From contig NIVC01000366.1 of NCBI GenBank assembly GCA_002269645.1, positions 186,001 to 250,000 on the forward strand: a stretch of DNA of 64,000 nt, written 5' to 3'. This document shows positions 18,957-53,488 of the stretch, in pieces (positions within the stretch are counted from its first letter, which is position 1; each line of letters opens with the position of its first letter). The translations under genes and the position numbers were made by a program. The notes beneath the pieces are model-generated. The model ran no database searches. It had not been told where the DNA came from and saw nothing but the letters and a program-made list of their open reading frames with translations. This DNA is from Macrostomum lignano. Its lineage: Eukaryota.

Positions 18957-19386
18957 AAAGTACGCCCAAGACTGCCCTAAACTCGACGAAGTCAAGACGA
19001 ATCAACTTTCGACTAATGATATTGAAAAGCTACCGGAGCAAACGACTGCCGTTCCTGCTAATCGAGCGGGCGATTACGTCACCAAGAACGTCTCTGTCGA
19101 ACTGCAACCAGGTGGCAACTTAACTCTTTCCACGGTCCCAATCTGGTTTTGGATTGTCATTACCATCGCAATTGCTGCCGGGATTATAACGATAGCGTTG
19201 ATTGTTTTAGTTTGCCTCAAAAAGAGACGCCCAACGAATTTGTATTTGAAAAGGGGTCAAACGGCACCTCTAGTTCGGCAATTAGAGGAAGGCTGCATTG
19301 GTAATTCTGTGCCCTCGATTGTTTTAGCGGCGGATGAAATTAGAGAGCGCAGTCGGATATCGAATGTCAACATATCGAATGAGTAG
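18957..19386 (+). CDS. TNFR-like receptor paralog 1, last exon only (end of CRD, stalk, TM, tail); first exon not located
   Basis: Acceptor TTTCAG at 18956. The exon starts (R)KYAQDCPKL, homologous in sequence and phase to (R)RYEFDCPQL of paralog 3. TM IWFWIVITIAIAAGIITIALIVLVC is followed by KKRR. Confidence 0.65.
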
Positions 19387-20854
19387 ATTAATCTAATCAC
19401 TTTACTCAATATAATATTTTCAACTTCTCTTCTAGGACGGTCTAGGACTGCGCGGTGTAGTTTTAATCCGTTACTACATTTATGCATTAGCGAAAAGTAT
19501 GTCTAGATATTATCTGACTGGCATAATTAAGTATACCCTTACCCCACGCTCTTACCCCATAGCTTTATATCACATGTACTAACATGCTGCACTTTTTATT
19601 ATTCAACCGAAATAAGATTGATTTTTTATTAATATACTTAACGAGATGTATTTAATGTTGTTTTGAACTCCGTACAATTTGATTAATTGATGTTTAACCA
19701 AGGAATCAGAAGCGTGATGATCAATTTTCGCTATGCTCGTACATATAAATAGTCATTCGCCAAAACTTTACCCAACTGCTAACACATACATGAGCAGAAT
19801 TTTCGTAACATTTTTCCAAATTTAACTTGCATTATGCTATTGAAATTCCGTACTCTAAACTTTGTTACTTTTTCTGGTGACTATATATTATTTTCCCAAC
19901 TACATCAGGGTACCATGCATGCCATGTGTGCTAAATTAGAAGAATGGCAATCTTTCCTGCCCAGATCAAATGCAATCTTGGATCTTGTGATGAAAAAAAT
20001 GATAATTTTCCTGTCTCTGCAGTACAGTTTTTTCAGGAAATAGGCCTACAAAAAACTATACAGGACCTATGAATTTTACGTTCTGTGTTATATTACAGTA
20101 GTAGCTACTTGAATTCGAAATCTGATGGATGCAACATTATGGTGGCCTATAAACTGTTTGGTGAAGGTCTCTATATACGTATTAGTGCTGTAATGTTTGC
20201 GCTTTGACTATAAGTCACACTACTATGTAGCTGAATGATGTACATGCCTGTACTGGTACGCAATTGGTAACTGTGCACATAGATTGATGGCTACATGTAC
20301 GAGTACAATCACTACCAGCTTAGAGTAGTTTATATTTCGAGTAATACGAGAGTAAATATGAGTGCACTGTGAAAAATGGGTGTGACTAGGCAGACACAGT
20401 CATATTTTAGCTTAGCTAGTACCGACAAATATGGAAACCGCAAGCACGTACAGTTATAGCATATATAGCCTATAATAATTAAAACTCGACGTACAGCTGC
20501 AAGCATACGTACTAGCAACGTTAAAGAAATTCTGGGTAAAGTACAATAATGAATATGAATGTGCAGTCACTGAATGTACACTGAATAGCCAAAAATAGCT
20601 CTTGAATCAGAGAAATATATTTTTAGCAAGGTGAGAAAAACCTATATAATTAGCTCTAAGCTAAGGATTGTCACACAGTACACGCAAAGGATTACCTGCC
20701 AGTCATATCAAACTTTACTAATTAAAAGCTCTAATAGCTAATTATTATTGAGCCTCGGTGAACCTTTATTAGACTTTGTTGATGCCTGACACACCTGTGG
20801 CCAACTCAGTCAACCAACCACCTTAGCTTAATTATCGTCTGAATATCGTCGACA

Positions 20855-21538
20855 ATGTCCGTACACACTGTGACAGCCGTCATATCGCTGACGCTTGCCA
20901 CAGTTGCTGCTGTGTCAGTCGAAAAACTTCAAATCCACTACTGTCCACCTGACGAGTTCGCCGACTCTATGGGCCACTGTCAGAGCTGCGACTGGTGCCG
21001 AAGAATTCAACCGGTGGATGGCGATGCCGAGCAAGTTTCGCTTGAACATCTGCACAGACAGGACATCTGCGATCGGTTTGGCGCGCTCTGCTTCACCTCG
21101 CAGATGAGCACCGCTGTTCAGAAGCTGGACGCGAAGCTTGAAGCATTTCAAACGACGCCAAACAGCATCAAATCGTCGGACCTAATTGCAACACGAGATG
21201 CGCAGAAGAAGATCGCGGAATCTGTTTTCACTGAATCAAATTCATCATCAATAGACTCCACAAAACATAGTGAGGCTCGTCCTTGGTCCAAGCTTGCTTC
21301 AATCATTGCAGGAGCCGCTTCAGCGGTAGGTCTGGCCACAATCGTGTTGATTCTAATCCTTTTGCTCCGGAGACGAAGGTCAGCCCAAAAACGACGTCAG
21401 AAAGCGTTGCTACATGATTCACTGGACACCGCTAAGAGTACAGAGGAAGGACTCGGTGGTTCGAGGAACTCAATTGAGCGGACACGGGAGTGCATACAGG
21501 ACAGAAATAGGGATACAGGGCGAGTCATTGCAGTTTAA
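20855..21538 (+). CDS. TNFR-like single-CRD type I membrane protein, paralog 2 (intronless, 227 aa)
   Basis: Signal peptide; CPPDEFADSMGHCQSCDWC..LHRQDICDRFGALC (6 Cys); Ser/Thr stalk; TM followed by RRRR; tail contains STEE; no death domain. Confidence 0.75.
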   Translation: MSVHTVTAVISLTLATVAAVSVEKLQIHYCPPDEFADSMGHCQSCDWCRRIQPVDGDAEQVSLEHLHRQDICDRFGALCFTSQMSTAVQKLDAKLEAFQTTPNSIKSSDLIATRDAQKKIAESVFTESNSSSIDSTKHSEARPWSKLASIIAGAASAVGLATIVLILILLLRRRRSAQKRRQKALLHDSLDTAKSTEEGLGGSRNSIERTRECIQDRNRDTGRVIAV

Positions 21539-21555
21539 TGTGTGGTTATGAGGGG

Positions 21556-21815
21556 CAGGGGTGTCGCTACCGGGGGGACATTGGGACATGTCCCCCACCA
21601 AAAGTTATGGGGGGACATACAAATGCTTTTTCCCACCGCCACACCGTGATGGAAATCAATAGTTTTTGCTTCAGGGCGCCAAAATATAGCGCCTGTGGCG
21701 CCAAAAAGGAGTTGCTATACAAAATTACCACGATTCCAAAAATTATGTAGGAATTTAGTCATGTAAAATTCTTAACTTAGTCCCGCTCACCATAGAATCC
21801 ATGGCGACGCACCTG
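21556..21815. mobile_element. Possible hAT-type MITE just after the paralog 2 stop codon
   Basis: Imperfect TIRs CAGGGGTGTCGCTA / TGGCGACGCACCTG; no 8-bp TSD found. Confidence 0.4.
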
Positions 21816-23247
21816 CATGCTATCAAATCAGTTGTTTATTTGATTAATCATTAAGTGCTCCATTCCTCATCCCTCTTATCTATTTTTAGTGGCTTGAAAT
21901 TTCCATCATTGGTAAATCTTGAATTATGTAGCTGTAGGGACTTCTTATAGTTAAAATTGAATCCATTACCCATACACCAAGTGAATTATTATCGTTCAAT
22001 TTATATATATTTTTTGTATTCATTGCACAATAATTTTTTTGTTTTGCTGTGTTTCTGTTTGCTAAACAAGAATTACTTGCAGATAGCTACTATAGAGGCC
22101 CTAATCCGTCGCTAATTTTCATTTAGTAAAAATTGAATATCGAATCAGAATCATTAACTGTACATATGCATGTATATCCGTTGATTCTATTACATGTGCA
22201 TGTAACATGTACATGGCTCCTATAATGATCGAACTTTCATTTGTCATGCAAGCAATCAAAAGCTGTGTCAAAGAAAAATTATTTTGTTTAACAAAAATCG
22301 AGTTTGAGGTTGCTTTTTCTAACAGTAGCTAGCTAAGAACATTTTTCCTTGTACATTAATTAGATTGCTTATCATATTATCAATAATCGACTCTCATATG
22401 TAAGCTATAAGTTCAGTTTGAAATTTTCGCGTTGTACCATTTTAGCGGAGGAAATATGTCGATTGAAATAAACTTTTTATTAGCAGGCTGCTTTTATAGC
22501 TTGTATTTCGGTAAATTTTCTTCAAAATTCTACAACCTTGACTTCCAAGGAAAATTTATTCATGAACTTAATTAATTATATTAACCGAAATGAAACCGAA
22601 ATGTGGTGCTAAAATGACTGCTATCAATATCTTTCCCAAAAATATATAGGAATTTGCTATTTGCCATTTATTTGTGGAATTATTGGCTTTGTCCCCCCCC
22701 CTCACCATAAAATACACGGTGGCCTGGTGACCATTGTTAAAGCCATTATCAACGAAATTTTCCATCTGTTTTTTTTAACTTTAACGTTCTCTTACTACTA
22801 ACTGCCTACTTGAAGGTTAAGCCAAATACGGAGAATCTCCAGTTGACATGGACAATTTAAATTTTGGTTCAGTTCCATGTTGCTTGACAAAAATGCGCGA
22901 GCAACTTTTTTATCCAACCCCCCCCCCCCGAATGCAAGATCCACGTACACGGTAGGTTACTCGTGTAAATGTACACTATATTTTCAAATGTACAGAAGTG
23001 AAGGTATGTCTTTTGACTACATTCAAACTGTGCTCATCCAGCTCCAGTTCTATATTTAGAAGCTATATATGTAACGAGCGTACATGTATATGACGTCTTA
23101 AGCCACGTACAGCAAATATAGCATATAAAAATAGGCATTAAGGCTTTATTTGAAAAGCCAACCGGCCTTTTGACTAGCCAAACTTTATTTGAAGTGCTAT
23201 ACTGCAGCCTTGAATCTGGTTCCAAATCAGCTACATACAATAGAATA

Positions 23248-24957
23248 ATGAGACCAATGGTTTCGCATCTAATTTTTGGAGTGACAATTGTAATTTCAAT
23301 TAACTATTATGTCGCAATAGCAACTACAATGACAAAAAATCAAACGGTTCGGTGCAAGGAGGGAGATTTTGCTAACTTTCACGGAGAGTGCATAAACTGC
23401 TCCTGGTGCAACAGCGAGTCCCTGGAGGGTCAAGAGCGTCTTCATCGACAGTCTATTTGCAGGTAAACACTAATTATTTATTCTAAATTTAGTAAGCCAA
23501 CAGGGACTATACTTTTAAGTCACTAAAATACGAGCTATATGTGCATGCAAAGCGTGCCGTTAGTCAACTGTTTAAACATTAAATTTTGCTTTATAAATGC
23601 AAGTTTCAAACCGAAGAAGTCTGAAAATTATATATTATTAAAGAGCGGCAATGTAAGCATGTTTGTCAGCAAGATTCAGATGATTATTATTGTTATTTTT
23701 TATATCTATGACCACTGGTTATGTGTTTAGAGCTCTTACGTCTATGGCCAAGATAAATGACTGTTGCCGACTAGCTACTGGTCTGTCTATGTCTATGGCC
23801 AAGACATATAATCGTGCGTGTAAAATGACTGCCGACTGCTGGTCTGTCTATGTCTATGGCCAAGACATAAAATCGTGCGTGTAAAATGACTGCCGACTGC
23901 TGGTCTGTCTATGTCTATGGCCAAGTAGCTGTGGGCAAAAATAGTAGTGAGCTAAACACGTTTTGACAAAACACATACTTTCTTCATTTGCTAATCCGGA
24001 TGTCCAAAAAGGTGATATACATGTATTTGAGCTAGAATTTTGTGCTAGAGAAACAGCATGATTGAATTGTACTTGAATTTTTTGTGGCGACCCCTTTTGA
24101 ATTACGAGCTAGTTGTGTAATTTGAAGACTCCTTTTATCGAATGCATTATCAAGGCATCGGTCTATAAACACGTGTTACAGAAGAAAACTTTAGCAGTTC
24201 AGCTATACTAAATTTTCACCTACCCAAGACACTGACATTAGCTATATATGACGTTGCCCATAAGTTATTTCTTAATTTCGAATAACAAACAAACCAGAAA
24301 AACTTAGTTAAGCTACACTACAGTAAAATTTTATCTAAACGGAATTTAGATAACAAGCAAGCGTTTCTGACTCATGCACTTAGTATAATCTAAAGCTACG
24401 AACTATAAAGAAAAACAGTAACAATTTGAGCATGTTGCGTACTAATTTTGTATAGAGATCCAGGACTTAAATTTTTTAAATAAAACGTGCTTATATTTAC
24501 GTAATTCCTAACTTTCTTTAGACGGTACGAATTTGACTGTCCTCAGCTGCAGCGAGAGCTGAGTACGAAGCAGACTGAATCGGTGAGAACTACTACAAGC
24601 CCGTCAACTGCACAAACTGACTACCAATATTCACATGTCACAACAAGCCCATCACCGTCACCATCCGACGTGACTGACAATGGCCCAGCCGTCCACTCAG
24701 TTCCCAATGCTTCGCCTCCGGTGTGGGCTTGGGCTGTCGGCTTCAGCGTACTTGTTGTTGTCGGTTTAGCAGCGGCTTTGATCTTCGGTTGTACTCGGCG
24801 AAAAAAAAATTTCAAACGCCGGGATTCAAGAAGAAACGAGGAACAGACACAGCAGACTGAGCCGTTTGTTGGCAACCGCATGCAACCGGCGAACTCATCG
24901 ATTTCGATTGAAATGACGGCCAGAGAGCAGACATGCAGAAATAATCGGTCTTTGTAA
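23248..24957 (+). CDS. TNFR-like single-CRD type I membrane protein, paralog 3 (exons 23248-23462, 24522-24957; 216 aa)
   Basis: Signal peptide; CKEGDFANFHGECINCSWC..LHRQSIC/RRYEFDC across a phase-2 GT-AG intron; Thr/Ser/Pro stalk; TM VWAWAVGFSVLVVVGLAAALIFGC followed by RRKK. Confidence 0.78.
23740..23925. repeat. 61-bp tandem repeat, about 3 copies, in the paralog 3 intron
   Basis: GTCTATGGCCAAG recurs at 23791, 23852 and 23913. Confidence 0.9.
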
Positions 24958-26039: not shown

Positions 26040-27110
26040 TGAGAAAGAGGACAGAGAGATGGAGATAGAGTCTAGATGGAGAATAGGGCTGTGAGAGAAT
26101 CTAGAGATGAAAAAGGATCAAGAAACGAAAAAGGAAAGGCAGAGGGAAGGGCAAGGTGAATAGAGGAAAGGAACAAGGTGGGCAGAAGAAAGGCAGAGGG
26201 TACGTAGAGGTAGAGAGAATGTGGGGGATCGGAGAGAGAGGGAGAGATGGGGAGAGGGAGAAATGGGTTAGAGAGAAGGAGAGATGGGGTGTGAGGGAGA
26301 GGTGCTAAGAGAGATGGGAAGAGAGGGAGAGATGGGGGACAGAGAAGAAGAGATGGGGAGGGAGGGAGAGAGAAGGAGGAAGAGACAGAGAGAGAGGGAG
26401 AGAAAGAGAAAAACGGGGGAAGACAGAGAGAGAAATGGGGGGAGAGGGAGAGATAGGGAGAGAGAGGGGGAGGGATGGGGAGGGAGGGAGAGATGGGGAG
26501 GGAGGGAGAGATGGGGAGAGACAGAGAGGGGGAGGGAGAGATGGGAAGAGAGGGATGGATGGGAAGAGATGGGGAGGGAGGGAGAGATGGGGAGGGAGGG
26601 AGAGATGGGGAGGGAGGGAGAGATGGGGAGGGAGGGAGAGATGGGGAGGGAGGGAGAGATGGGGAGAGACGGAGAGATGGGGAGGGAGGGAGAGATGGGG
26701 AGAGACAGAGAGAGGGAGGGAGGGAGAGATGGGGAGAGGGGGGAACGGGGGAGACAGGGGGAGAAATGAGGAAGAGGAAGAAATGGGAAGAGAGGCAGGG
26801 ATGGGGAGAGAGATTGGGAAGGAGGGAGGAAGGGATGGGAACTGAGGGAGGGATGGGGAGAGAGATTGGGAAGGAGGGAGGAAGGGATGGGAACTGAGGG
26901 AGGGATGGGAAGAGAGAAGGGAAAATCGGGGGGGCAGAGGGAAAAATGGGATAGAGGGGGGATGAGAGAGATGGGGAGGGAGGGAGAAATGAGGAGAGAG
27001 AGAGGGAGAGATGGGAAGAGACGGAGAGGTGGGGAGAGAGGGAACGGGTGGGTAGAGAGACAGGAGGATATGGATTGGGGAGATGGTGGGGCAGATGGGG
27101 AGAGGAGTGC
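26040..27110. repeat. Polypurine low-complexity tract (GGGAGAGATGGGGA-like units)
   Basis: Almost purely G/A on the + strand. Confidence 0.95.
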
Positions 27111-29737: not shown

Positions 29738-31960
29738 GAGAGGGGTGGAGAGGAAGGGAGAGGGGTGGAGAGGAAGGGAGAGGGGTGGAGAGGAAAGAAG
29801 GGGGTGGAGAGGAAGGAAAGGGTGGAGAGGAAGGGAGAGGAAGGGAGAGGAAGGGAGAGGAAGGAAGAGGGGTGGAGAGGAAGGGAGAGGGGTTGAGAGG
29901 AAGGGAGAGGAAGGAAGAGGGGTGGAGAGGAAGGGAGAGGGATTGAGAGGAAGGGAGAGGAAGGGAGAGGGGTGGAGAGGAAGGGAAAAAAAGGGAGAGG
30001 GGTGGAGAGGAAAGAAGAAGGGTGAAGAAGAAGGGAGAGGAAGGGAGAGAGGGGTGGAGAGGAAGGGAGAGAGAGTGGAGAGGAAGGGAGAGAGGGGTGG
30101 AGAGGAAGGGAGAGGAAGTAAGAGGAAGGGAGAGGGGTGGAGAGGAAGGAAGAGGAAGGGAGAGGAAGGGAGAATAAGGGAGAGGGGTGAAGAGGAAAGA
30201 AGAGGGGTGGAGAGGAAGGGAGAGGGCTGGAGAGGAAGGGAGAGGGGTGGAGAGGAAGGGAGAGGGGTGGAGAGGAAAGAAGGGGGTGGAGAGGAAGGAA
30301 TGGGTGGAGAGGAAGGGAGAGGAGTGGAGAGGAAGGGAGAGGGGTGGAGAGGAAGGGAGAGGAAGGGAGAGGAAGGGAGAGGAAGGAAGAGGGGTGGAGA
30401 GGAAGGCAGAGGGGTTGAGAGGAAGGGAGAGGAAGGAAGAGGGGTGGAGAGGAAGGGAGAGGGATTGAGAGGAAGGGAGAGGAAGGGAGAGGGGTGGAGA
30501 GGAAGGGAGAGAGGGGTGGAGAGGAAGGGAGAGAGGGTGGAGAGGAAGGGAGAGAGGGGTGGAGAGGAAGGGAGAGGAAGTAAGAGGAAGGGAGAGGGGT
30601 GGAGAGGAAGGGAGAGGAAGGGAGAGGAAGGGAGAGGAAGGAAGAGGGGTGGAGAGGAAGGGAGAGGGGTTGAGAGGAAGGGAGAGGAAGGAAGAGGGGT
30701 GGAGAGGAAGGGGTGGAGGAAGGGAGAGGGAGAGGGTGGAGAGGAAGGGAGAGGGAGAGAGGAAGAGAGAGGAAGGGAGAGGAGAGGAAGAGAATAAGGG
30801 AGAGGGGTGGAGAGGAAAGAAGAAGGGTGAAGAAGAAGGGAGAGGAAGGGAGAGAGGGGTGGAGAGGAAGGGAGAGAGGGTGGAGAGGAAGGGAGAGAGG
30901 GGTGGAGAGGAAGGGAGAGGAAGGGAGAGGAAGGGAGAGGGGGTGGAGAGGAAGGGAGAGGGGGAGAGGAAGGGAGAGGAAGGAAGAGGGGTGGAGAGGA
31001 AGGGAGAGAGGAAGGGAGAGGAAGGTTGAGAGGAAGGGAGAGGAAGGAAGAGGGGTGAGAGAGGAAGGGAAGAAGAGGAAGGGACAGAAGGAAGGGAGAA
31101 GTAAGGAGAAAGGTAAGAAAATGAAAAGAGAGAGGAAAGAAGAAGGGTGGAGAAGAAGAGGAAGAGAGGGGTGGAGAGGAAGGGAGAGGGGTGGAGAGGA
31201 AGGGAGAGAGGGGTGGAGAGGAAGGGAGAGGAAGGGAGAGGGGTTGAGAGGAAGGGAGAGGGGTGGAGAGGAAGGGAGAGAGGGGTGGAGAGGAAGGGAG
31301 AGGAAGGGAGAGGGGTTGAGAGGAAGGGAGAGGAAGGAAGAGGGGTGGAGAGGAAGGGACAGAAGGAAGGGAGAAGTAAGGAGAAAGGTAAGAAAATGAA
31401 AAGAGAGAGGAAAGAAGAAGGGTGGAGAAGAAGGGAGAGGAAGGAAGAGGGGTTGAGAGGAAGGGAGAGGGGTGGAGAGGAAGGGAGAGGAAGGAAGAGG
31501 GGTGGAGAGGAAGGGACAGAAGGAAGGGAGAAGTAAGGAGAAAGGTAAGAAAATGAAAAGAGAGAGGAAGAAGAGGAAGGGAGAGAAGGGGGCGGAGAGG
31601 AAGGGAGAATGGGTAGAAAAAAGGGAGAGAAGAGAAGGAGAGAGGGTGGAGAGGAAGGGATAGGAAAAAGGGAGATTAGAAATTGAAGTGAGAGGGAGAA
31701 GAGGAAGGGAGAGAGGGGAGAAAAGGGCAGAAGAGACGCAAAGAGAGGGAGGACGAGAAAAGCAATATGGCCGGAGGGGAGCAGGTTGATTGAAAGATGA
31801 AGATTGGGTAAGAGAGAGAGAAGAAATTATAATGTAATGAGAGACTGAGAGAGAGAGACCAGGGGAGGAGAAAAAGAGAAAAGGAGAAGAGAGGGATGAG
31901 ACGGTTGAAAGGGAAGGAGAGATGGGAGCGGAGAGAGGGAAGATGAGAGAGGGGATCTGA
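29738..31960. repeat. 2.2-kb polypurine minisatellite (GAGAGGAAGG / GGGGTGGAGAGGAAGGGA units)
   Basis: Direct inspection; contains internal higher-order duplications. Confidence 0.97.
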
Positions 31961-35205: not shown

Positions 35206-36204
35206 CAAACTTCATTGGTCAATTTGTCCATCAGGATCCGAGTGGGAAGGGGGAATGGGAGTGAATGAACAACCATAGACTATTTTATTTTACGCTCATA
35301 GACTCGTTTGTTTTCTAAAATGATATCACCGGTAAATTGCTTTATTGTCAATTTCAAACTATGACGGGTCATTGCTTGAATTCAATTGCCTTAGCGTAAA
35401 TTACCATAGACATTTTGAACAATGGAGCCCGCTCAGAGCTAGGTAGACTGTCTTTATTATACAATATCCAGAAGAGAACTATATACGAGGTGCCGGGTCT
35501 CACTAGTAAATCGCCCAGACACCATCATCTCGAGACTAGCCAACATGGCTGAGTAGCAAATATCAATCAGAACCCACAAAGATAGTTTTGAACTAAAAAG
35601 AGTCGAGACCTCTACAAAGATACTTGTCACTTCTACTACAACTTCATATGGTACTAATCAACCGAAAAGAATGTCCTAGACATTTTCAATCCAGAATTTA
35701 AGCGCACCCTGTCACAGTTTAGATTAGCCAAACAATTAACTGGCCTGCGAAACAATGAGGACTGTGAGACCAAAGACCCCTTACGAGAATTGGACCTACC
35801 CAAAGTGCCATGTGCTGGGGGGGGGGGGGGGTAGAATGTGAAGTTCACTTCCCATACAAGTGCAGATGGAACTTTTAGTGCCTCCTTCGGCTTCAGGGAT
35901 CAATTAGAACAGGAAATCTCAGTCAAAGTTTCTAATACTAAACCTTACTGCAAATGTTTAAGTATTTTACGCACTTAGTTTTAATAAAAATAATCGTTGT
36001 CTCAAGATAGCTAAAGTTTATGTGATTTTCATAAGCTGCTAAGGTCAGAGTTTTTTATAAAGGGAAAAATGCGTACATGTGTTCAAAGACTTGTCTTGAT
36101 GAGCTTTCCTAAATTTATATACTTCGCAATTTAAGCAAGGACCACTGGGTCTTTCGCTTTTTGGTTCTTGGATTTAGGACTGAGATTTTAACACTGGCGC
36201 CACC

Positions 36205-40990: not shown

Positions 40991-42482
40991 GGACAGATCG
41001 CAGGCCTAGTCTGTCTCATATTTCACAGGCCATGCGAAAAGCAATTGTGGGACTTTATTGGTTCCTACTGAACCCTCAAAGCAGGGATTGACTCTTTGTG
41101 GCTGGGCTAAGACAGGAAAGTTTGCAGGGATGCCAGATAGTTGAATAATTCTAGTGCACAATAGTGTGTATTCTAGCGCGATCGTTTTCCAAATCTTGGT
41201 ATACATGTATTGACTATATACAACAGTTTTGTTAATCTTATATCTTATGTTGCATAACTTCTCGTATAATACAAGCTTTCACTTCTTGCTTCAATGTTTC
41301 CCATAGACTTCTACAACAGATGCACTTGGCTTATCAAGCATCGAGTTTGTGTATTAAAGGGGTACTGTATAAAATGTCTCCTAGCATTTATCCGAAATTA
41401 TTTGAGTAGAAACAGGCTACAGGAAGTTGAAGAGGGATAAATTTTGTGTACATAGTGAAAAGCTGAAGCTCTTGCGATAAAACATAAGATCAGCAGAGAA
41501 AAGAGAAAATCGGCCTCCATCTTTTTTCTGCATGATTTGGCCGTTTCCCGTCCCGAGAATTGAGTAGTCCCTGCGCGAGGGCAATGGCCACTAGCTACGT
41601 TTCACTGCCCCCACCAGAGACGTTCTCAATTATCAGCGACCCTCACAATGCTGGCAAACGCTGGAGCGAGTGTTCAGCACGCTTTCAAGATTTCTTGACG
41701 CTTCTGGCATCACCAATGAAAACCAACGATGCAAGCTGCTAAGCTACACAGCAGGGAAAGAAATTGCAGACATAATCCGAGCTCTGCCGCCAGCTGAAGG
41801 GAATCAGGCCACACTCGACAACACGCTAAATGCTTTAAAGCAGCAGTTTGACGAGAGAAAGAAAATCGTCTTCGCTCGATGCCAATTTCAAGGAACTGCA
41901 TCCAGCAACAAGGAGAGAAAATCGAAGCCTGGTATTCACGAATGCGTGCTTCAGCCGAGGCTTGTGAGTTCGAAAATCTCCTCATCAGAGACCAGCTTGT
42001 AGCGACCTGTACATCAGACAAGTTGCGACTGCGGCTACTCCAAGAGACCAAAATTTCCTTGGACGAAGCCCTGTGCAAAGCGAGAGAGTTTGAAGCAGCG
42101 TAGGAGCAGGCATCGGAGATGGAGAAGACAAATTCGCAGGTGGCAAGCGTTACAAGATCCAACAAACCCCGGATGAACGGCCGTGAAGCATCCAGCACCG
42201 CCAGAAGCAGCAGCAGGCAATCTCAACAGCAGACATGCTACCGCTGCGGAGAAAAAGGTCACTCTACATGCGAATTGGCGAGAGGAAAAATCTGCCTCAA
42301 CTGCGGAAAAACCAATCACCTAGCCAAAGCATGCCGCAAAGCACGCTCGAGCAACAGCACGATTCGATCGCAAGTCAGCGCTAACCTAGTGAGCACCTCA
42401 CCGGAGCCAAACCTCGACACTAGCATCGGCGAAGACGTTTTTTGCCTGTGCAAAGACAGCACAGCTACCCAGTAGACGTCTC

Positions 42483-42675
42483 TGTAGTGACTGACGCGAG
42501 AGACAGAAGTTTAGATGAATCATAAGCTTACGGCCCCGACTTGGGCGTGGGGTGCAATTATATATTTGAGCTCAAAGCTCTGTAATCGATTGCTTTAGAA
42601 TAAGTGTACATCTATGATACAATGTACACGGGAGTTAAAATCAACGTGCCAAGAAGTGGTGTGCAGAGTACAACA
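42483..42675 (-). repeat. 3' LTR of the inner Gypsy
   Basis: Four differences from the 5' LTR over 193 bp by manual count. Confidence 0.95.
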
Positions 42676-45600
42676 TCTTTCCCCTTCGCGGAGATTAACG
42701 GAGTAAAATCGGATTAAAAAAATGAATGTCATGTGCAAAAAAAACAAAAGGAGGTTTATAAGTTTGTCAGTTTTGCGCGAAAAAAATGCTGGTCCTATAA
42801 TTGGGTTGCGGTAGTTTGCAGCTTCTTGGATGCGGACGGTTCGCGATTGGCAGCTCCCCCGCACCGGCTGCGGCCGGCGGCTCCGCGGGTGCTGGAGCGG
42901 CCGTCGGGTCGCCTTCTGGACCGCCGGTCTCGTCTGGTCCGTCTCCTGTTGGCCGCTCTGGCAGTCGCTTGACGTCGCTGGCGTGGCGCATGCAGTTGCT
43001 GCCGCCCGTGCTCTCCAGGATGACAGAATCGCCTTTGACTTCGGTGACTGTCCAGGGCTGAATTTCAAATGGCGTGTCCGTTTTCGATGGCTGGATTTTT
43101 CTGCAGAGGACTTTATCGCCAGCTTGGATGCGATGCTCTGCGGCTGAGTGCTTCGCGTCGGTGTAGTGCTTCATGGCGGCCTTGTACTGACGGTCTCTGT
43201 TCCTGATCGCCTTTGCTGGAGCCTGCGGCTTGACTCCTGGAATGCAGTCTTGGACTGGTCTCCCGAACATCAGGTCGGCTTGGGCGACTCCTGTGGCCGT
43301 GTGCGGAGTGCTGCGGTACGCGACAAGCCACTCCTGCAATGCCGTCCTCCAGTCGGTTCCTTGGCCGTTGGAGATGCGGAGCAGCTTATTAAGGGACCTG
43401 TTGATTCGCTCGGTAATGCCATTGTCCTCGGGATGGTACGGTGTGATGCGCCGGTGGCTGATTCCGTGGCTTGTGACGAAACTCCTGAAGGCTTCTGATG
43501 TGAATGTCGGACCGTTGTCCGTCACGATTCGCTGGGGAATCCCGAAGGTCGCGAAGACCTGCTGTAACTGTCTGGTGGTGCGGTCGGCTGTGATCGACTT
43601 CATCGCCACGACGATGGGGTAGCGTGAGTAGTGGTCTATTATCACCAGGAAATGTCGACCGTTGGCAGGTCCAAGAAAGTCGATGCCGATGGTGGACCAG
43701 GCAGACTCTGGCAGCTCAGTCGGTTGCAGTGGGGCTGCCGAAACTTCCGCTTGATGGTTGGTGGCCGCACATTCCAGGCACTGTGCCACCAGTTGCTTGG
43801 CCTCAGCTGACATTCCGGGCCACCAGACCTTGGAGTTGAGTCGGCGCAGTGTTTTGGTCTCGCCTTGATGTCCTTGATGAGCCAGCTGCAGGACAACGGG
43901 CCGCTGGGCTCTTGGGATTACCAATCTTTGGTCTCGCAGCAGAACGCCAGAGGCCTCTGTCAACTCGTGTCTAGCGGCGTGCAGTCGTCGGATGCTGTCG
44001 TCCCGCAGATCCCAACTGCCTGTTCTCAATGATGACAGCACAGTCGATAGAATGGCATCACGGGCCGTGGCTTCCCGCGCGACTTGCTGCAGGGACAGGC
44101 CTCTCGGCGTCGCCGCTTGCGCGATGCTGCCGATGAAGTTTGTGTCCAGGATCTCGCCGATGTTGATCGATGTCGGAGCGGGCTGTGGCTGCCGGCTGAG
44201 GATGTCGCTCGGGTTGAACGGGCCTGGCCGATAGATGACGCTGAACTGCATGTCCTGGATACTGAGCGCCATGCGTTCGATGCGTGGAGGTGGGCGCGAG
44301 CCGGGCTTGAGCATGAAGGTCAGCGGCTTGTGGTCGGTGACGACAGTAAAGTTGGCGGCGCCGCTGAGATAGTGTCGAAATTTCAGGCAGCCTCGGACTT
44401 GGCTGCGATGCGATCTCGGACTTCTTGGAAAGCTTTGGCCTGCTGCTCGCCCCACTGCCAGCTTGCACTCTTCTTGGTCAGGTCCCGCAGCGGCTTCGTC
44501 ATGTCCGCCAGGCCTGGCATGAAGCGACTGACAAACGTAACCAGACCGAGGAAGGAGCGGACTTCCGAGGCGTTCGTTGGCTCTTTGAAGCTTTTGATCG
44601 CCGACACCTTGGCTTCAGCTGGCTGGATCCCTTTTGCCGACAGTCGCATGGCCAGGAAGTTGACCTCCGGCACCGCGAATTTGCACTTGGACGGGTTGAG
44701 AGTCAGGCCGTGTCCCTGAAGACGCTGAAGGCAGCTGGCTAGGCGACTGTTGTGCTCCTGGATGTCGCGGGCATACACGATAATGTCGTCGTGCACCCAT
44801 CTCACTCCTGGCAGGCCGCTGAGTACTGTAGACATCACACGCTGTAGAATTTCTGAAGCCGACATGAAGCCCATACAGAGTCGCGTGAGCCTCATTAAGC
44901 CCAGTGGTGTCGAGAAGGTCAGAAACTTGCGTGACTCCTGATCGACCTTGATTTGATGAAAGGCTTTGTTGATGTCTAGCTCCGAGAAGAAGTGTGAACC
45001 GGCCATTTCGTCTGTGACTTCTTCAAAGGTTGGAATCGGCTGCTTCTCCAGCACTACGTATTGATTGAGGTCTCGAAGGTCTTGGGTGATTCGCTCCTGG
45101 TTCGGACTGCTTTTTGGTACCACTACCATTCTAGCGACCCATTCGGAAGGCTCAGATACTCGCTCGATGATGCCTTCGCTGAGCTGGGCGTCGAGCTCTT
45201 TGATGGCTGCGTCTCGTAGGTGGATTGGCACTCGGCTAGGCGGGTGGCACACTGGAATAGCGCTGTCCTTGAGTCGGATGCTCACTTCGACATCCTTGAC
45301 GCAGCCAACTCCTTGGAAGAGCGCCCGGTGCTTTTTAAGGATGTTGTCAAGCTGGAGGTTTGCTGGAAGGTTGGCTGAATTGGCCTCCGGACTCGATGAC
45401 TCCATTGCCTTTGCCTTGTCGGCACTCCCGATGCTATTGATGTGGGTTTCCGGTGCCGGACCCACCCGTAGTACTCCGAACTTCTCGCTCGTTGCCCTTC
45501 CGAGGATGGTGACGCCCGGGTCTTGCACTACTGTGAAGTCCACTACTTCCTCGAGACCGCTGATTTTGACAAGGAGCTCAGCTCTGCCGGCGGTCGCCAG

Positions 45601-46670
45601 TGGTGTCTTCGAGCCGAACGGGTACAGCTGCCGTGCTGATCAAAGCAGTGGCGTTTTGGCCGTTTTGAGATCTTGCAAAGTTGCCTGGTCCATAACGTTG
45701 CAGCTGGCGCCACTATCGATAAGCGCCTCGACCCGCTTACCGTTGATAGATATGCTCATCAGCGGCAGCTTGTTCGCAGTCAGGCAGAAGACCTCCCCTT
45801 CGTCGCTTGGTGACTTGCTGGATTCTTCCGGGTGTTGATGCTGACCACCAATGGTGTGCACGCGGTTTCTGGAGTTGCCCTTAGACATACAGGCCTTGGC
45901 CAGGTGGCCCACCTTTTTACAGATGTTACATGTTTTGTCTTTGGCCGCGTCGCAGCTACGGTGTCCGGTTTCACCGCATCAGTAGCACTTGGACTTGCTG
46001 CCAGGCTTGTAGGATGGTCTGTCTTGTTGCTCACCTCTGGTGCGCCTCATTGAGTTGACTGTCTCGTCGCGGCGTGGCTCCATGGCCGCTGACTAGTAGC
46101 TAGCGGCTTCGAAGGCTCGGCACAGCTGCAGTGCATCCTGCAAGTTGATGTTGGCGGTCTGCAGTAGCCGTCGTCTGAGTTGCTCGGAGTTGCATCTGGC
46201 GAAAATCTGGTCGCGGATGAGGGAGTCGCGCAAATTGTCGAAGTCGCAGCTTTCTGCGGCCTTGTACAGCTGGCTGACCCATGCATCGATGCTCTGGCCT
46301 GGTTGCTGCGTGCAGTTTCGGAACTCGTATCTTGAGAACACCACGCACCTGCGGCCTGTGAAGTGGTCCTTGAAAGCCTTGATGAGTTCTTCGACAGTGT
46401 TTCCGCTATTGGTCAGCTGTTTGTATAGCTCGGCCAGCTCCCTCCCGCCTGTGTACAGCAGGACTTGTCTCTGCGTGGCCGGATCCTTGACTCCGGAGGC
46501 GTGGATGAAGCACAGAAAGCGCGACGATCAATCTTCCCAACGTGATGACAGTGCGTGTGCTTCTTGGTTGACGTTGAATGACTCCGGTGGAGGCAGTTGC
46601 AGTTGGACAACGTTGCGTGTCTGGCCACTGTTTTCAGTAGACATACTCGTAGCTTAGCTTGCGACGACAG

Positions 46671-46863
46671 TGTAGTGACTGACGCGAGAGACAGAAGTTT
46701 AGATGAACCATAAGCTTACGGCCCCGACTTGGGCGTGGGGTGCAATTATATATTTGAGCTCAAAGCTCTGTAATCGATTGCTTTAAAATACGTGTACATC
46801 TATGATACAATGTACACGGGAGTTAAAATCAACGTGCCAAGAAGTGGTATGCAGAGTACAACA
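46671..46863 (-). repeat. 5' LTR of the inner Gypsy
   Basis: Matches 42483-42675. Confidence 0.95.
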
Positions 46864-47410
46864 GTCTCGTTAACTGTCGAAATCGGGCACTGTAAGCTAC
46901 CGATGATGGTGGAGAGCGGAGCCAGCTGCAGTATCATGAGCATCAAAACATTCCGACAGCTGGGCGATCAGCGAATTCGCGCCACCAAGGTAAAAGTTCA
47001 TGCAAATGGAACGCCCGAACCTCTCAAAATCATAGGTACTGCGAGCTTAGGCATTAGGTACCGCTAGTGCAACTGTGCCCTTTCCCTTTCTGCAACTGCG
47101 ACGGTCTAACGATACTCGGACGCCAAGCTGCCTTTGAGCTAGGAATCCTGCATATCCAGCGGCGCCAATTCTCAGCCAGACAGAAGATGTTAACTCCAAC
47201 GTCAAGGCAGCCGAGGGGTATGAAAGCCAGAACATTTAGGACATCTTGCATCAGCACAAAAAAGTATTTGACGGAATTGGATGTATCAAAGACGTGCAGG
47301 TCGAAGTTCAGCTTTCGGACAACATGGCCCCAGTGTGTCAATCCGCCAGCCCGAGTTGCGGCGCATCTCCGAGAATCTGTCATCAAGGAGCTGAAAGACT
47401 TAGAAAGGCA

Positions 47411-48238
47411 AGTCTGGGAAGCCGCAGCGAGAATTTCCGGTTCCGACAGTGTGACAGTCGGACGTCCCGCGCTTCCGTCCGACATCGCAGGCGACCGCCA
47501 CTCGTCCTCCGTTTGGGGCTCCGTCACGACCTCCGTTGACATCTCAGAGGCCTCGCTGCACTGCTCTGACTGCGACACGCCGTCCATCTCGAGGTCCGGC
47601 TTGTTGCCGACGTCCATCCCCAGCACGAACGGACACGTGGGGAACTCCTTGGCGTGGAGCTGCATCGGCGACTCTCCTTCAGCGAGACTGCCGGGCTCCA
47701 GCGCTCCCTGGCAGAAGGCGCACCGAACTCGGCCATCGGTGGCCGATTGGAACAGCCCCGCCGATGCCATCGACCTTGCCGTGTCAGCAGTCACGGATGA
47801 GCCGAAACTGCGAGCTCTGGCCGACTCCGACATCATCTCCCTGACTGCTCCGCTGCCCTCCGCGAAGCTGAGCTGCTGGGGCACGCGGCTGTCGCTGCTG
47901 GCTCCAGTGTAGTAGCGGAGCAGCTTGCAGATCGCTGAGCTGACGGCATGACCCGCTGACCCGCTTGCTTGAGGAGTTTTCAGAAACTTTGTTGAAAAAT
48001 ATTGCAGTGCTTTGCCCAGCATAGCGACGTACGGGATGTTCAAGGCTGACTGATAAGTAAAAAATCCCAGCTTTGACATCCTGTCAAATAGCTTAAGACA
48101 ACACAAAGCAATATTATTGCTCTCTGCGTCAATTTTCTCGCTCGCTGTTTGTTTCCTTTCGGTCTCCAGAGAACGCATATATTTTCCAAGTTCCTTTAGT
48201 TGAATATAAAACGAAAGCACAGTTTTTTTTAGTAGCAA
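47411..48238 (-). pseudogene. IAP copy 2, truncated after BIR1 and fused to antisense Gypsy sequence (chimeric ORF continues to 47054)
   Basis: 47411-48055 is nearly identical to the reverse complement of 51905-52550. Homology stops at AAASQT, at the Gypsy junction. Confidence 0.85.
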
Positions 48239-49290: not shown

Positions 49291-49537
49291 CCTGATATCT
49301 ATGGTAATTACTGCTCTCTTTTCAATTGCATATATTTCATGGTTGAACAGAGAAAGGAAAATCAATATTACAGAGTGTCTGGGTTATTGGCCATAGACTA
49401 TCTGAGTTTGAGTCAACAAAAATATAGGATTTTTCGTTTGATTTCATAAAATTGTCATTTGATTTCGTCCATAGAAGTTGGCAGCGCGGCCATAGAGTCT
49501 ATGGCAATAAAGTGCGCTGTTTTCCGATTGAATTCAT

Positions 49538-50230
49538 AACTTTGCCACTTCATTTCGACATACCCAGTAGAAAGGCAACAGAAAAGTCGATGCGCTTGTC
49601 CAGTACAGAAAGATCTGTTAAAAACAGAAAGCTGTGTATTTAAGTCACATGAGGAAGTAGGTAGTTGCAACAGTGAAATCAGTTATGTCCGCCAAAGTTA
49701 ATGCTCGTTCGCTGCAACAAGCTACAAATTTCACATTATCTGCTGCTCATTGATGCACAGGGGCAGAAACCGCATCACATGTCGTTCCCAGGCAAGGCAC
49801 TTCGCGGCGGAAATTTCCTCTAGTGCAACGTAGCCGCAGCGGAAAAGCACCATGAGTCTCCACTGCGTTAGGTTGATGCCATCAGGCGGATAGCTAAGTT
49901 CCTGTTGAAGCTCAGGTGTTGCTAGCTGGCGTTTAAGCGAAGCCTTGAGGCAACTGTGTGCCTGCTCCGCGGCGTTAAGAAATGGAGAGTACGGTGGCAG
50001 AGTTCGCAGTTGAATACGATTGGCCGCGTTTATACGTTTCCAATGGACGCGTATGCAGCCATTTTTAGGCACACAAGGAAGGTGACTGTTGCCCAAGAAG
50101 AGGACACGTTCATATAGGCTTTTCATTTCTATGAGAGGTTTGGCCATAGATATTCACCCACTGATATCCCAGCCCCCTCTGGCAGTGTTGAGTCACTCCG
50201 CGCGTCAAGTCGAAATGAAGTGGCAAAGTT
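49538..50230 (-). mobile_element. Tc1/IS630-family deletion derivative
   Basis: Perfect 22-bp inverted repeats AACTTTGCCACTTCATTTCGAC flank the transposase C-terminal fragment LRTLPPYSPFLNAAEQ. Confidence 0.7.
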
Positions 50231-51650
50231 TTGGCTCTAAAAACTGTGGGAGGGTAAGCGAGTGAGACGTGCCTCAAGCTTTTTTAGCTTCTGCTTGAAC
50301 ACTATGGCAGCAGAGCTGCTGTGGGAGGTAATGGGTGTGAGCAAAAATAGGCGCGGGAGGCTAGTGGTTAGATCCGTAAGTAGCTCTTTAATATATGCGA
50401 ATTTCACAGTACTTATATATAGGCTATCTTCATTGTACACTCTCGTGTGCAATGGCATTGGTCGAACGACCAGCGTACGTTTTTTTATAAATGAGCGCAG
50501 TTATAAAGCAGTCACAAGTTCAATTTCAACGAGAATTTACTGCCACTGCCTGCACTGTACAATGAGTAAATGACTGACTGTACACTAGCTATAAGATTGT
50601 TCCTAGTAGCTAGGAACGAAGAAAGTATATTTTTTTACTTGGAAACACCACACTGATCAAACTGAAAATCATTTTAGCTATTAAGGATCTTAACTCAATC
50701 ACAAACGTACCCTGCACCTTACGTAGCACTATGATTTCAGGTGAGTTCTCACTGCTTAGTTCTCACATATTCTACAAGTTTTTTACTTCCTACATACTCG
50801 TACCTTGAGTACATCACAGAATTGACACAGAATTCCGAATTCAACTATTTTCACACAATCGCACTACTTTTGTTATGAAACTATGGCCAGTAGTATCAAC
50901 AAACTAACACTAACACTAACGTACGAGTAAAGATTTTCCGGACATTATTTGCGTTCTCCGGGATTTTATTTGGTTGCTAACATTCAATAATATCCCGTAA
51001 AATCTTTAATTATGTCTGTTTTATATGAGATTAAGCATGCCTTTTGCGGGAGCTATTTTGCTCGTATCTTATACAGAAACATCACAAAGCCACTGGTAAA
51101 AAGCGATTCTTGAGGGTGCTGAATAAATTCAAAAGTCCGAGGGAGAGGCCGATAGTAATTAACTCCTCTTCCATCCACCTCTATTATTAGTGCTTTGCCT
51201 GAGCGCAGCGTACACATGTATATACACGTACATGTACTTACATATGTACGCTTTTGTGACTGCGCGCTTACGCCAATTGGGCTCTCGTGACTGTGAGGTC
51301 TTCTGAATTGCGCGCTTATTCAGCCCACCCGTTAGGCTCAGCGCCAGAACGAAGTTCAGTTTACGAATCTTAGAACACATGCAAGTATTTCAAGTGTAAA
51401 AGGTCTAACCAGTGAAATCAAAACATTTTCGTTTTCGTCCAAATTTTCGGTTTCGTTTGATTTTGCTTCCTAATATTAAACAGTTTTTAGTTTCATTTTA
51501 CACTGCACACTACTTAATTGACATGAAACAGTAATACAACAAAGACATCAACAATCGTCTATTTGTTCTCCTGAGATCAGTCAACAAAATTAAAAATGAA
51601 TACGAGCGTAGAGGGGCTTATGACTATAAAATCCTAACAAATCCTTGCAG

Positions 51651-53488
51651 GAGAGGATAAACGCAACGTCATTTCTGAATCAACATCATCAAAGACTCCA
51701 GAGCAGGACAAGGAGACCAGCTATAAAATAATATTTATTTCTCTCGAATGGGTAATAGCTAGTATCATAACTCAGTTCAAAGATATAGATTCATTAAAAA
51801 ATGAAGGCAAAAAGAAAGTTACCGAGAAAATGGAGGAAGGACACAACATAATGATAATTTGCCACACTCTGTTAATCGATCGTATCCAAAATCTAGGAAT
51901 TTTAGTGACTCAATCAGCCTTGAACATCCCGTACGTCGCTATGCTGGGCAAAGCACTGCAATATTTTGCAACAAAGTTTCTGAAAACTCCTCAAGCGAGC
52001 GGGTCAGTGGGTCATGCCGTCAGCTCAGCGATCTGCAAGCTGCTCCGCTACTACACTGGAGCCAGCAGCGACAGCCGCGTGCCCCAGCAGCTCAGCTTCG
52101 CGGAGGGCAGCGGAGCAGTCAGGGAGATGATGTCGGAGTCGGCCAGAGCTCGCAGTTTCGGCTCATCCGTGACTGCTGACACGGCAAGGTCGATGGCATC
52201 GGCGGGGCTGTTCCAATCGGCCACCGATGGCCGAGTTCGGTGCGCCTTCTGCCAGGGAGCGCTGGAGCCCGGCAGTCTCGCTGAAGGAGAGTCGCCGATG
52301 CAGCTCCACGCCAAGGAGTTCCCCACGTGTCCGTTCGTGCTGGGGATGGACGTCGGCAACAAGCCGGACCTCGAGATGGACGGCGTGTCGCAGTCAGAGC
52401 AGTGCAGCGAGGCCTCTGAGATGTCAACGGAGGTCGTGACGGAGCCCCAGACTGAGGACGAGTGGCGGTCACTGGCGATGTCGGACGGAAGCGCGGGACG
52501 TCCGACTGTCACACTGTCGGAACCGGAAATTCTCGCTGCGGTTTCCCAGACGTCGCTGCCTCCACCACAGACGCTGCGGTCAGCCGCGGAGCCTCGAGCG
52601 GTGCAGGCACTCGAGATGCTCGAGCTGGAGGCGTCTCTGCTGCCGATCGAGCATCCGGGCTTCGTCCGTCAGAGCGACCGGCTGAGGACTTTCGAGAATA
52701 TCGAGCTGTTTGAACCGGCAGATCAGGTCGCGTCAGCGGGGTTCTTCCTGCAGACAGCCGGGACGTTAAACTTGCTGATCTGCTTCGCGTGCAACCTGCG
52801 GTTGTCCGTTGCGGGCTCCCAGCTGCTCGGCAACGCGTGGATCGCCCACGCCGTGTGGTCTCCGAGGTGCGGCCACCTGCTGAGCCGTCGAGGCGCCGCG
52901 TTTGTGCGACGGGTTCGACATTTCGTGGCGCCTGACGTTGTGGCCCGCTTTTCAGAGGTCCTGAGCTCGAGCCGTAATCACGGACAGCAGGATGAGCAAC
53001 AATCACAGGTGAAAATATCATACTCTGGAAACCTGGGAGTCAGGTATCGAATCGAGGCGAGAGAGATCCGAGCTCGATCCGACGTTCCGTCAGCTCGAAT
53101 GGCCATCCGTCTGGGATTCTCAGCTGCCGAGGTTCGCACAGCAATGGAGATGCGGCTGATGTTTGTGGGTGACGACTTCGCGACTTCTGATCAGCTGCTG
53201 GCGGCCGTTGTCAGCCAACACGACGTTCTGACTGTGCGTTCCATGGACATCGAAACATTCAGAGAGTCCGAGCTGCACCGTCTGCGAAGCTCGTCAGCGT
53301 TCGGAGAGCCGGAGGAGTCGCCCGAGACGGACTGGCGCACCTGCAAGGTGTGCATGGTGCACCGGATTAACGTAATTTTGCTGGACTGCGGTCACCTGTG
53401 CTGCTGCAGCCGCTGCTCTGCCAACCTGCAGACATGCCCCATCTGTCGGAAGGTGATCCGAGCCGAGGCGCCCGTGAGGTTCGAGTAG
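51651..53488 (+). CDS. Inhibitor of apoptosis protein, copy 3 (2 BIR + UBA + RING). The frame is open from a putative acceptor at 51650; first ATG at 51830 gives 552 aa
   Basis: Same domains as copy 1 with very high identity from QSALNIPY to the stop. Confidence 0.9.

Follow-up and report, generated by a model that had tools for sequence, protein, structure and literature searches.

The region described here lies in a 64-kb window of Macrostomum lignano contig NIVC01000366.1 (assembly GCA_002269645.1, Mlig_3_7), and all coordinates are positions in this window. Three paralogous genes for small type-I membrane proteins (g1, g2 and g3) are arranged head-to-tail on the plus strand at 18957-24957, and three IAP-related sequences (IAP-A, IAP-B and IAP-C) occupy 32238-53488. 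Close relatives of the open reading frames (ORFs) of both families were found in Macrostomum lignano alone. An earlier inspection of the DNA (the sequence-only reading) had described a TNFR-like trio followed by an IAP trio and had proposed a co-expanding receptor-to-ligase module. The analysis established the gene structures of both families, a rearrangement in the IAP cluster, a conversion mosaic and the level of constraint. The count of three related sequences per family was borne out, with one member of each family being a remnant: g2 and g3 are intact and g1 is reduced to its second exon, while IAP-A and IAP-C are intact BIR-BIR-(UBA-like)-RING genes and IAP-B is a 5' fragment with BIR1 only.

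Locus L003 of contig NIVC01000366.1 agrees with window 13173-34957 at 100% over 21,785 bp. Two further contigs of the same redundant neopolyploid assembly carry diverged duplicates of parts of the region. Contig NIVC01000059.1 (contig 59; L001 and L002) runs collinear to window ~11-37 kb, with 75-91% identity at the nucleotide level and a synonymous divergence from the window of about 0.05-0.15 for most genes, and contig NIVC01002087.1 (contig 2087; L004) is collinear with window 39.1-58.9 kb.

Gene structures of the two families

Alignment of the membrane-protein paralogues showed ~25% amino-acid (aa) identity and a common plan, which consists of a leader peptide, one six-cysteine module, a Ser/Thr/Pro mucin-like stalk, a transmembrane (TM) helix and a tail of 45-55 aa. 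The hydrophobic N-terminal leader and the single TM helix, which is followed by an R/K stop-transfer cluster, give the proteins a type-I topology, and the helices predicted at 3-24 and 148-199 in a structure model agree with it. The Cys module common to the paralogues reads C-x4-F-A-x3-G-x-C-x2-C-x-W-C ... H-R-x2-I-C-x6-C, and its first half keeps the TNFR-type spacing C-x4-F-x7-C-x2-C-x2-C in all of them. The tails share a conserved motif, [GN]S-x2-SI[EV], and are short and, as had been implied, free of a death domain (Pfam).

The g2 gene (20855-21538, plus strand) is an intact single-exon ORF of 227 aa, 85% identical to M. lignano protein P0008, and encodes a signal peptide, the 6-Cys module (C-x12-C-x2-C-x2-C-x23-C-x6-C), the stalk, the TM helix and a 50-aa tail. 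In g3, exon 1 (23248-23462, plus strand; GT donor at 23463) encodes the signal peptide and Cys 1-5 of the module, and exon 2 (24522-24957, plus strand; splice reconstruction) the sixth Cys, the Ser/Thr/Pro stalk, the TM helix and the tail; once spliced, the gene yields exactly the deposited M. lignano protein A0A1I8HSU8 (P0009). The g3 intron (23463-24521) lies between Cys 5 and Cys 6 of the module, and g1 has an intron that agrees with it in position and phase. As g2 is intronless in both genomic copies, an old intron loss within the tandem array is indicated.

What is present of g1 in the window is exon 2 (KYAQDC..., stalk, TM helix and 55-aa tail; 18957-19386, plus strand), with the acceptor ...TTTCAG directly preceding AAAGTACGCC at 18957. 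It shows 71% aa identity to exon 2 of P0010, the duplicate copy, with a ratio of non-synonymous to synonymous substitution (dN/dS) of 0.32. The place that exon 1 holds in the duplicate copy is occupied by an unstranded (TCTG)n microsatellite of 178 copies and 710 bp (17348-18057; Tandem Repeats Finder, TRF). Contig 59 (L001 3899-6026) aligns to window 15191-17347, homology ends at 17347, and the L001 exon 1 (signal peptide and Cys module, from 6177), which lies just upstream of a microsatellite, has no window counterpart. Neither tblastn nor a six-frame Cys-pattern scan of the window found g1 exon 1 or a third Cys module. The window copy of g1 thus appears to have lost its Cys-module exon.

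The IAP-A gene consists of two exons separated by a 2.9-kb intron, both on the minus strand. Mini exon 1 (36978-36999) contributes the ATG and MSNNGYT plus 1 nt and has a conserved counterpart in exon 1 of P0001, the model annotated in contig 59 (L002). Exon 2 (32238-34078) encodes the N-terminal region, BIR1, BIR2, a UBA-like segment and a C-terminal RING (Pfam BIR in two stretches, E=7e-11, 42.9 bits; zf-C3HC4_3, E=1.7e-11), and the spliced product of 620 aa matches the annotated duplicate model. A 21-bp minisatellite (34 copies, 94% matches; 36198-36912) lies in the intron directly downstream of mini exon 1 and gives rise to three spurious ORFs of 260-270 aa. The long exon of IAP-C (51651-53488, plus strand) is also intact and carries two BIR stretches (Pfam E=1.5e-13, 51.5 bits) and a RING. 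Its 552-aa ORF starts from an ATG at 51830, the frame is open from an acceptor at 51651, and an A-type exon 1 was not found upstream; a 129-aa C-terminal model (P0015) is annotated on the window contig. A retroposition origin of these single-long-exon genes was considered and rejected, given the conserved mini exon 1 and 2.9-kb intron of IAP-A and the fact that no poly(A) or target-site-duplication signature was seen.

BIR domains scoring above the PF00653 cut-off and retaining the zinc site were found as two stretches in IAP-A and IAP-C and as one in IAP-B. The zinc ligands are present in both BIRs as C-x2-C-x18-H-x6-C, with a spacer of 18 vs 16. The C-terminal RING (PF13920, E=1.7e-11, residues 517-558 of 566 in IAP-A), which is absent from IAP-B, aligns to the RINGs of cIAP1, cIAP2, XIAP and ML-IAP. 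The best PDB match is cIAP1 BIR3-UBA-CARD-RING (3t6p), and BIR2 is most like cIAP BIR3. Within the 3t6p match, residues 428-480 align weakly to the cIAP1 UBA (6.8 bits, i-Evalue 21), and Pfam UBA gave no match in the IAP proteins. This domain content suggests that IAP-A and IAP-C would act as RING-dependent E3 ubiquitin ligases.

The groove of type II BIRs, which binds the IAP-binding motif (IBM), is formed in XIAP-BIR3 numbering by W310, E314 and W323. Alignments to the BIR3 of cIAP1/2 showed that in BIR1 the LxxW position is taken by G/S and the HxxW position by Q, so that both groove tryptophans are absent, while BIR2 keeps HxxW (HAAW) and has A/V at LxxW and N-A-S in place of the acidic/Pro cluster D-D-P. 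Both BIRs are without the canonical groove residues, and therefore neither is a canonical IBM-binding type II BIR. The sequence-only reading had pointed to BIRs of a kind that has no peptide-binding groove; with the LxxW Trp replaced in both BIRs and the HxxW Trp in BIR1, its remark on BIRs that are not of type II was reasonable. By overall sequence, BIR1 is closer to type II BIRs (ML-IAP, XIAP BIR2/3 and NAIP BIR3) than to cIAP1 BIR1 (3m1d, E=5e-4). The degenerate grooves would bind partners other than classical IBM peptides.

Sequence evolution, rearrangement and surroundings

A comparison of the long exons of IAP-A and IAP-C revealed 62-77% identity over the first ~300 nt (~100 codons) and 94-98% thereafter. 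The IAP at the A position of contig 59 is A-like for ~300 nt and then 97-100% C-like, and the IAP at the C position of contig 2087 is 94.5% A-like. This mosaic across copies bears the signature of an ectopic gene conversion that covers the BIR1-to-RING body and leaves out the ~100 codons at the N-terminus; it explains the sharp similarity edge at ~nt 300 better than retroposition would. Gene conversion keeps the bodies 94-100% identical, both within the window contig and between the duplicated contigs, and the locus illustrates well how IAP paralogues in the duplicated copies of a neopolyploid genome convert one another ectopically. The second family is most likely a small IAP cluster that evolves in concert and bears the scars of transposable elements (TEs), the first ~100 codons of the long exon having drifted apart outside the converted tract.

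The IAP bodies are under purifying selection (dN/dS 0.27-0.31). The N-termini do diversify, as had been claimed, being the least identical part of the proteins, yet their dN/dS of 0.6-0.7 gives no sign of positive selection. Among the membrane-protein genes, dN/dS was 0.57 for g2 and 0.54 for g3 exon 1; g3 exon 2 reached 1.15 against its duplicate copy on 33 substitutions, which is indistinguishable from neutrality. No sign of positive selection, as 'co-diversification' would imply, was seen, dN/dS staying below 1 everywhere else. The receptor duplications (~25% aa identity) are far older than the present similarity of the IAPs. As the receptor paralogues are ancient and the IAP copies homogenised, the expansions were not synchronous. 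The proposed co-diversification of receptor tails and IAP N-termini consequently finds no support: no sign of co-variation was observed, the receptor paralogues are old, and the IAP copies are in concerted evolution.

The remnant IAP-B (47413-48238, minus strand; Pfam and alignments) is an inverted 5' IAP fragment of about 275 codons, comprising the N-terminal region and BIR1. Over 47413-48062 (650 bp) it is 98-100% identical to IAP-C in inverted orientation; its 5' 180 bp are diverged from IAP-C, and its 3' half was not found anywhere in the window. Between 47412 and 47413 it joins, with 1-nt microhomology, the interior of the reverse transcriptase (RT) region of a gypsy-like long terminal repeat (LTR) element, TE1, and its ORF runs on into the antisense of the element. 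The 5' part of TE1 (41670-42482, plus strand) carries gag with a CCHC zinc knuckle (Pfam zf-CCHC, E=3.9e-7) and is collinear with L004 at 98.6%. The element continues at 46864-47412 (plus strand) with the protease and the RT start and is cut off at 47412. The breakpoint was read against TE1 in L004, which is complete and uninterrupted there, and L004 contains neither IAP-B nor TE2 (described below). A simple TE insertion as the cause of the truncation was rejected, since the junction lies in the RT interior of TE1, away from the LTR ends, which suggests that it arose through a deletion or an inverted duplication. IAP-B is most likely a pseudogene and represents a recent inverted partial copy of IAP-C, joined to the interior of the gypsy-like element by illegitimate recombination.

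Nested in TE1 is TE2 (42483-46858, minus strand), a complete gypsy-like LTR retrotransposon with RVT_1, rve, Integrase_H2C2, RNase H and protease domains. The two LTRs, 201 bp each, agree at 96.5% and have TG...CA ends, a 5-bp target-site duplication (GTCTC) is present, and the empty site is preserved in contig 2087 (L004 3335-3385). TE2 therefore marks a recent insertion in one copy of the neopolyploid genome, a dated case of LTR-retrotransposon nesting whose empty site survives in the duplicate. Heat-activated LTR elements have been reported in M. lignano (PMC12801592), and TE2 is relevant to them. A DDE_3 transposase fragment (49731-50147, minus strand; Pfam DDE_3, E=3e-4) lies between IAP-B and IAP-C. 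We also observed that the ML2-assembly model P0002 (UniProt A0A1I8H139; 939 aa) is a chimera of antisense TE1-region ORFs (window 40038-42198, minus strand) and an IAP-A-type body (32238-34078, minus strand). It is wrong as a gene model, yet by joining TE1-antisense and then the IAP-A body it independently confirms the order TE1 ... IAP-A.

The stop codons of g3 (24957) and IAP-A (32238) are 7.3 kb apart, in agreement with the ~7 kb given by the sequence-only reading. The trio and IAP-A are transcribed convergently from opposite strands, and most of the interval is filled by two unstranded purine-rich minisatellite arrays (26231-27043 and 29747-31673; 10/18/157-bp periods; TRF) with extreme GC/AT skew. 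Given the convergent orientation and the 7.3 kb satellite spacer, no common promoter or transcript is to be expected. The block had been called TE-rich, and TEs and satellites are indeed abundant in it (two gypsy-like elements, two mariner copies, the DDE_3 fragment and large micro- and minisatellites), although the spacer between the families is minisatellite and not TEs. The GGAGAGGAAG-type arrays of the spacer are of kilobase scale and strongly strand-asymmetric, with a GC skew of up to 0.96; they produce long spurious ORFs on both strands, and a related array is found at 8848-9589 on the opposite strand.

Housekeeping genes had been named as the bounds of the block. On the right, this is confirmed by an exon of a DCN1-like (cullin neddylation) gene at 56958-57428 (minus strand), which matches DCN1-like protein 1 in the PDB (E=3e-18) and whose neighbour on contig 2087 (L004) is annotated as UBA_4 + Cullin_binding. 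On the left, the boundary is probably a thioredoxin-like membrane protein with a CPYS motif on the minus strand (Pfam Thioredoxin E=0.0011, below the cut-off). The left flank contains, at 6500-7138 and 8375-10413 (both minus strand), a Gln-rich ORF with a Cys/His cluster and the thioredoxin-like membrane protein. A 66-bp tandem array (55736-56577) and a proline-rich repeat (56845-57121) lie in or beside the DCN1-like gene, and their copy number differs from the contig 2087 duplicate. Of the mariner copies, the Mos1-type transposase ORF at 62187-63266 (plus strand; 359 aa, Transposase_1 + HTH_48) looks intact, and the one upstream of the trio at 11868-12722 (plus strand) is frameshifted. At window ~37.2 kb the collinearity with contig 59 breaks off sharply. 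The adjoining 9.7 kb of that contig (L002 1-9700) showed no similarity to the window, L004, IAPs or TE proteins; the duplicated copies differ there either by a rearrangement or by a large insertion. An Rfam scan returned no matches.

Gene models have been deposited for the trio in the contig 59 duplicate and, on the window contig, for g3 and the IAP-C 3' end only. Transcription as such is likely, because the GenBank models of Mlig_3_7 were built on RNA-seq (PMC5730564) and models exist for the duplicate trio, g3 and the IAP-C 3' end. The deposited annotation of the window contig has no model for g2 (20855-21538), IAP-A (32238-34078) or full-length IAP-C (51651-53488); transcripts that overlapped repeats or had redundant coding sequences were likely filtered before submission (PMC5730564). 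Corrected models are given here for two IAP genes of this contig that the annotation lacks or covers in part, and for one of its membrane-protein genes.

Identity of the trio and its relation to the IAPs

Whether the membrane proteins are TNFRs bears directly on the proposed module. TNFR_c6 (PF00020) is the top Pfam match for g3 (16.5 bits, E=0.012) and g2 (16.3 bits, E=0.014), two paralogues with 34% identity in the module, and an automatic, profile/PROSITE-based UniProt rule names all three proteins 'TNFR-Cys domain-containing'. These scores of ~16 bits fall short of the TNFR_c6 gathering cut-off of 29.4 bits, the matches cover profile positions 1-25 of 39 only, and the g1-type module (P0010) had no TNFR_c6 match in the Pfam search; the TNFR label of the sequence-only reading is thus sub-threshold. 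The UniProt names for this orphan family, resting on the same level of similarity, should be used with caution. The spacing of the module is 16-23 residues between C4 and C5 and 6 between C5 and C6, while the PROSITE TNFR pattern needs 7-11 and 7-9, respectively.

An exhaustive profile hidden Markov model (HMM) search of 1.84 billion representative proteins recovered three M. lignano clusters only, plus three chance matches to TM or low-complexity sequence, and a word-indexed protein search for relatives of the trio gave one match only. A profile search of PDB sequences returned no TNFR and a single LDL-A repeat (E=3.7). Structure prediction with AlphaFold2 was of low confidence for the full-length trio protein (mean pLDDT 50.8) and of moderate confidence for the ectodomain alone (mean pLDDT 64.6), in which a beta-hairpin is followed by a helix, reminiscent of BCMA-type modules. 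When both models were compared with the PDB by Foldseek, nothing was found below E=1.6; LDL-A repeats ranked first, and Grindelwald (6zsy) appeared at E=5.4. An LDL-A identity was rejected because the acidic calcium-binding cluster is absent from the sequence, and the resemblance is non-significant.

In the tails, a TRAF2-type S-T-E-E is present in g2 and its duplicate only. The aligned tails of g1, g3 and their duplicates contain no match to [PSAT]x[QE]E or PxExx[acidic/aromatic]. The coupling to TRAF2 through the tails that had been envisaged is not supported by this distribution, the canonical motif being found in one of the three tails and not conserved. Several TNF ligands and one canonical death-domain TNFR have been reported for M. 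lignano (PMC7519573), and a preprint counts 16 Wengen-like receptors.

We regard it as possible, at close to an even chance, that the trio belongs to the TNFR superfamily. The first family consists of three tandem paralogues, old in origin, for a type-I membrane protein restricted to Macrostomum; they presumably serve as cell-surface receptors, possibly as very divergent superfamily members with just one cysteine-rich domain (CRD). The same proteins can be read as an orphan family of small membrane proteins, fast-evolving, Cys-knotted and mucin-stalked (e.g. proteins of adhesion or of secretory cells), whose Cys spacing would be like that of TNFR or LDL-A modules by chance. The exhaustive search that found no homologue outside M. 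lignano, the truncated sub-threshold TNFR_c6 matches with none for the P0010 module, the loop lengths outside the PROSITE ranges, the non-significant PDB matches led by LDL-A repeats, the predicted helical second half of the module and the weak constraint (g2/g3 dN/dS 0.54-1.15) all favour such a reading. It accounts less well for TNFR-type models being the best Pfam matches of two paralogues so dissimilar in the module, for the UniProt rule naming all three proteins, for the absent calcium cage of LDL-A in our reading of the sequence, and for the Grindelwald ectodomain among the weak fold matches. An origin outside the TNFRs is thus a serious contender, somewhat short of an even chance.

The more ambitious proposal holds that the trio consists of death-domain-less TNFRs coupled through TRAF to the neighbouring IAP RING ligases, in a co-expanding and co-diversifying locus. 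It draws on the CXXCXXC-type module with its TNFR_c6 matches and UniProt names, the short tails, the g2 S-T-E-E that fits the TRAF2 consensus, BIRs which resemble type I BIRs in having no IBM-groove tryptophans, IAP N-termini as the most diverged part, the surplus of TNF ligands over canonical TNFRs together with the Wengen-like count, and the order of trio and IAP being kept in the duplicate copy. Against these stand a TNFR identity that was non-significant in every test run, a TRAF2 motif absent from g1, g3 and duplicates, expansions separated in time, N-terminal dN/dS below 1, families that converge on opposite strands across a satellite spacer of 7.3 kb, and one remnant member per trio. 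The trio and IAP order is kept on contig 59, a duplicate within the same genome; such linkage is expected from whole-genome duplication and is therefore not independent evidence. We consider this module improbable. A stronger version is very improbable: the trio would be unrecognised, extremely divergent single-CRD TNFRs, partners of the Macrostomum TNF/Eiger ligands, that signal via [GN]S-x2-SI[EV] to the neighbouring IAP E3s, with groove-less BIRs and divergent N-termini giving pair specificity. To our knowledge, a genomically linked receptor-ligase cassette is not known in animals. If true, the module would be a case, rare among animals, in which a receptor evolves in a linked cassette with the E3 ligase that acts downstream of it, and a tractable entry into TNF/cell-survival signalling in the regenerating, transgenesis-capable M. 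lignano.

A further reading takes part of the picture for an artefact of the redundant, repeat-rich Mlig_3_7 assembly, which could have produced the IAP-B/TE fusion, the missing g1 exon 1 and even the two IAPs on one contig. The assembly contains 180-312 Mb of duplicated sequence and >50% repeats (PMC5730564), the junctions fall at a retroelement interior and a 710-bp microsatellite, and L004 is without IAP-B and TE2. On the other hand, IAP-B is an imperfect copy of IAP-C at 98% identity with its own diverged 5' 180 bp, its junction has a clean 1-nt microhomology, TE2 has a proper target-site duplication, in the older ML2-assembly model P0002 an IAP-A-type body follows TE1-antisense ORFs in window order, and the flanks and N-termini of IAP-A and IAP-C are unique and diverged. 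An artefact is accordingly an unlikely explanation.

The region is probably an ordinary lineage-specific gene neighbourhood, in which two unrelated small families are adjacent by descent, and not a demonstrated signalling module. Any coupling between the trio and the IAPs is unsupported, being suggested by proximity alone, and the adjacency is known from one genome. Several points weigh against the neighbourhood reading. Both the absence of g1 exon 1 and the IAP-B junction are known from a single assembly, that of a repeat-rich neopolyploid genome, and might be errors of assembly. The TNFR-like assignment could be right, given the CXXCXXC signature, the PROSITE-based UniProt name and the several TNF ligands of M. 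lignano, and a TNFR-TRAF-IAP link would then be biologically natural. The sequences are too few for a formal distinction between gene conversion and recombination of the duplicated copies with each other. Under five Mlig gene IDs, M. lignano full texts and supplements yielded no data on expression, interaction or phenotype for these genes, and for that reason the function of both families is inferred only.

Comparison with known systems

The Macrostomum IAPs resemble vertebrate cIAP1/cIAP2 (BIRC2/3) and XIAP in the Cys2-His-Cys BIR zinc site, a putative UBA-like segment and the C-terminal zf-C3HC4_3 RING. In contrast to these, they carry two BIRs rather than three and no CARD, their zinc spacer is lengthened by a 2-residue insertion, an extra N-terminal region of ~110 aa is present, and their BIRs are without the LxxW Trp (both) and the HxxW Trp (BIR1); identity to the nearest non-Macrostomum IAPs is ~24%. 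With the IAP expansions of molluscs (oyster, clam; PMC8917759) they share local or tandem duplication, association with retroelements, non-canonical BIRs and largely single-exon genes. The scale differs, with two intact genes per locus copy vs 40-69 in oysters (PMC8917759), as does the outcome, since the Macrostomum copies were homogenised by gene conversion and not diversified in domain architecture.

The trio is like BCMA, TACI, BAFF-R and Fn14, and like Drosophila Grindelwald and Wengen, in being small type-I proteins that have one Cys-rich module with a CXXCXXC signature, an aromatic residue following its first Cys, and a short tail that is free of a death domain. Unlike these single-CRD TNFRs, it shows no significant sequence or fold similarity, has a longer C4-C5 loop and a shorter C5-C6 interval, and carries no conserved TRAF motif. 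The canonical platyhelminth TNFR (NGFR-like; PMC7519573) occurs in the same organism and possibly shares a common ligand set; it contains several CRDs plus a death domain and was detected by means of a TNFR HMM, in contrast to the trio. That survey reported one TNFR per flatworm and did not recover the trio (PMC7519573).

The pathway that the sequence-only reading invoked is that of the TNFR2/CD40-TRAF2-cIAP1/2 complex, in which a death-domain-less receptor recruits a TRAF adaptor and an IAP RING ligase bound via its type I BIR1. The vertebrate components are unlinked in the genome, whereas the Macrostomum case is known from linkage alone. Judged by sequence similarity, the trio is an orphan Macrostomum-restricted family, and the IAPs are members of the known RING-bearing IAP class.

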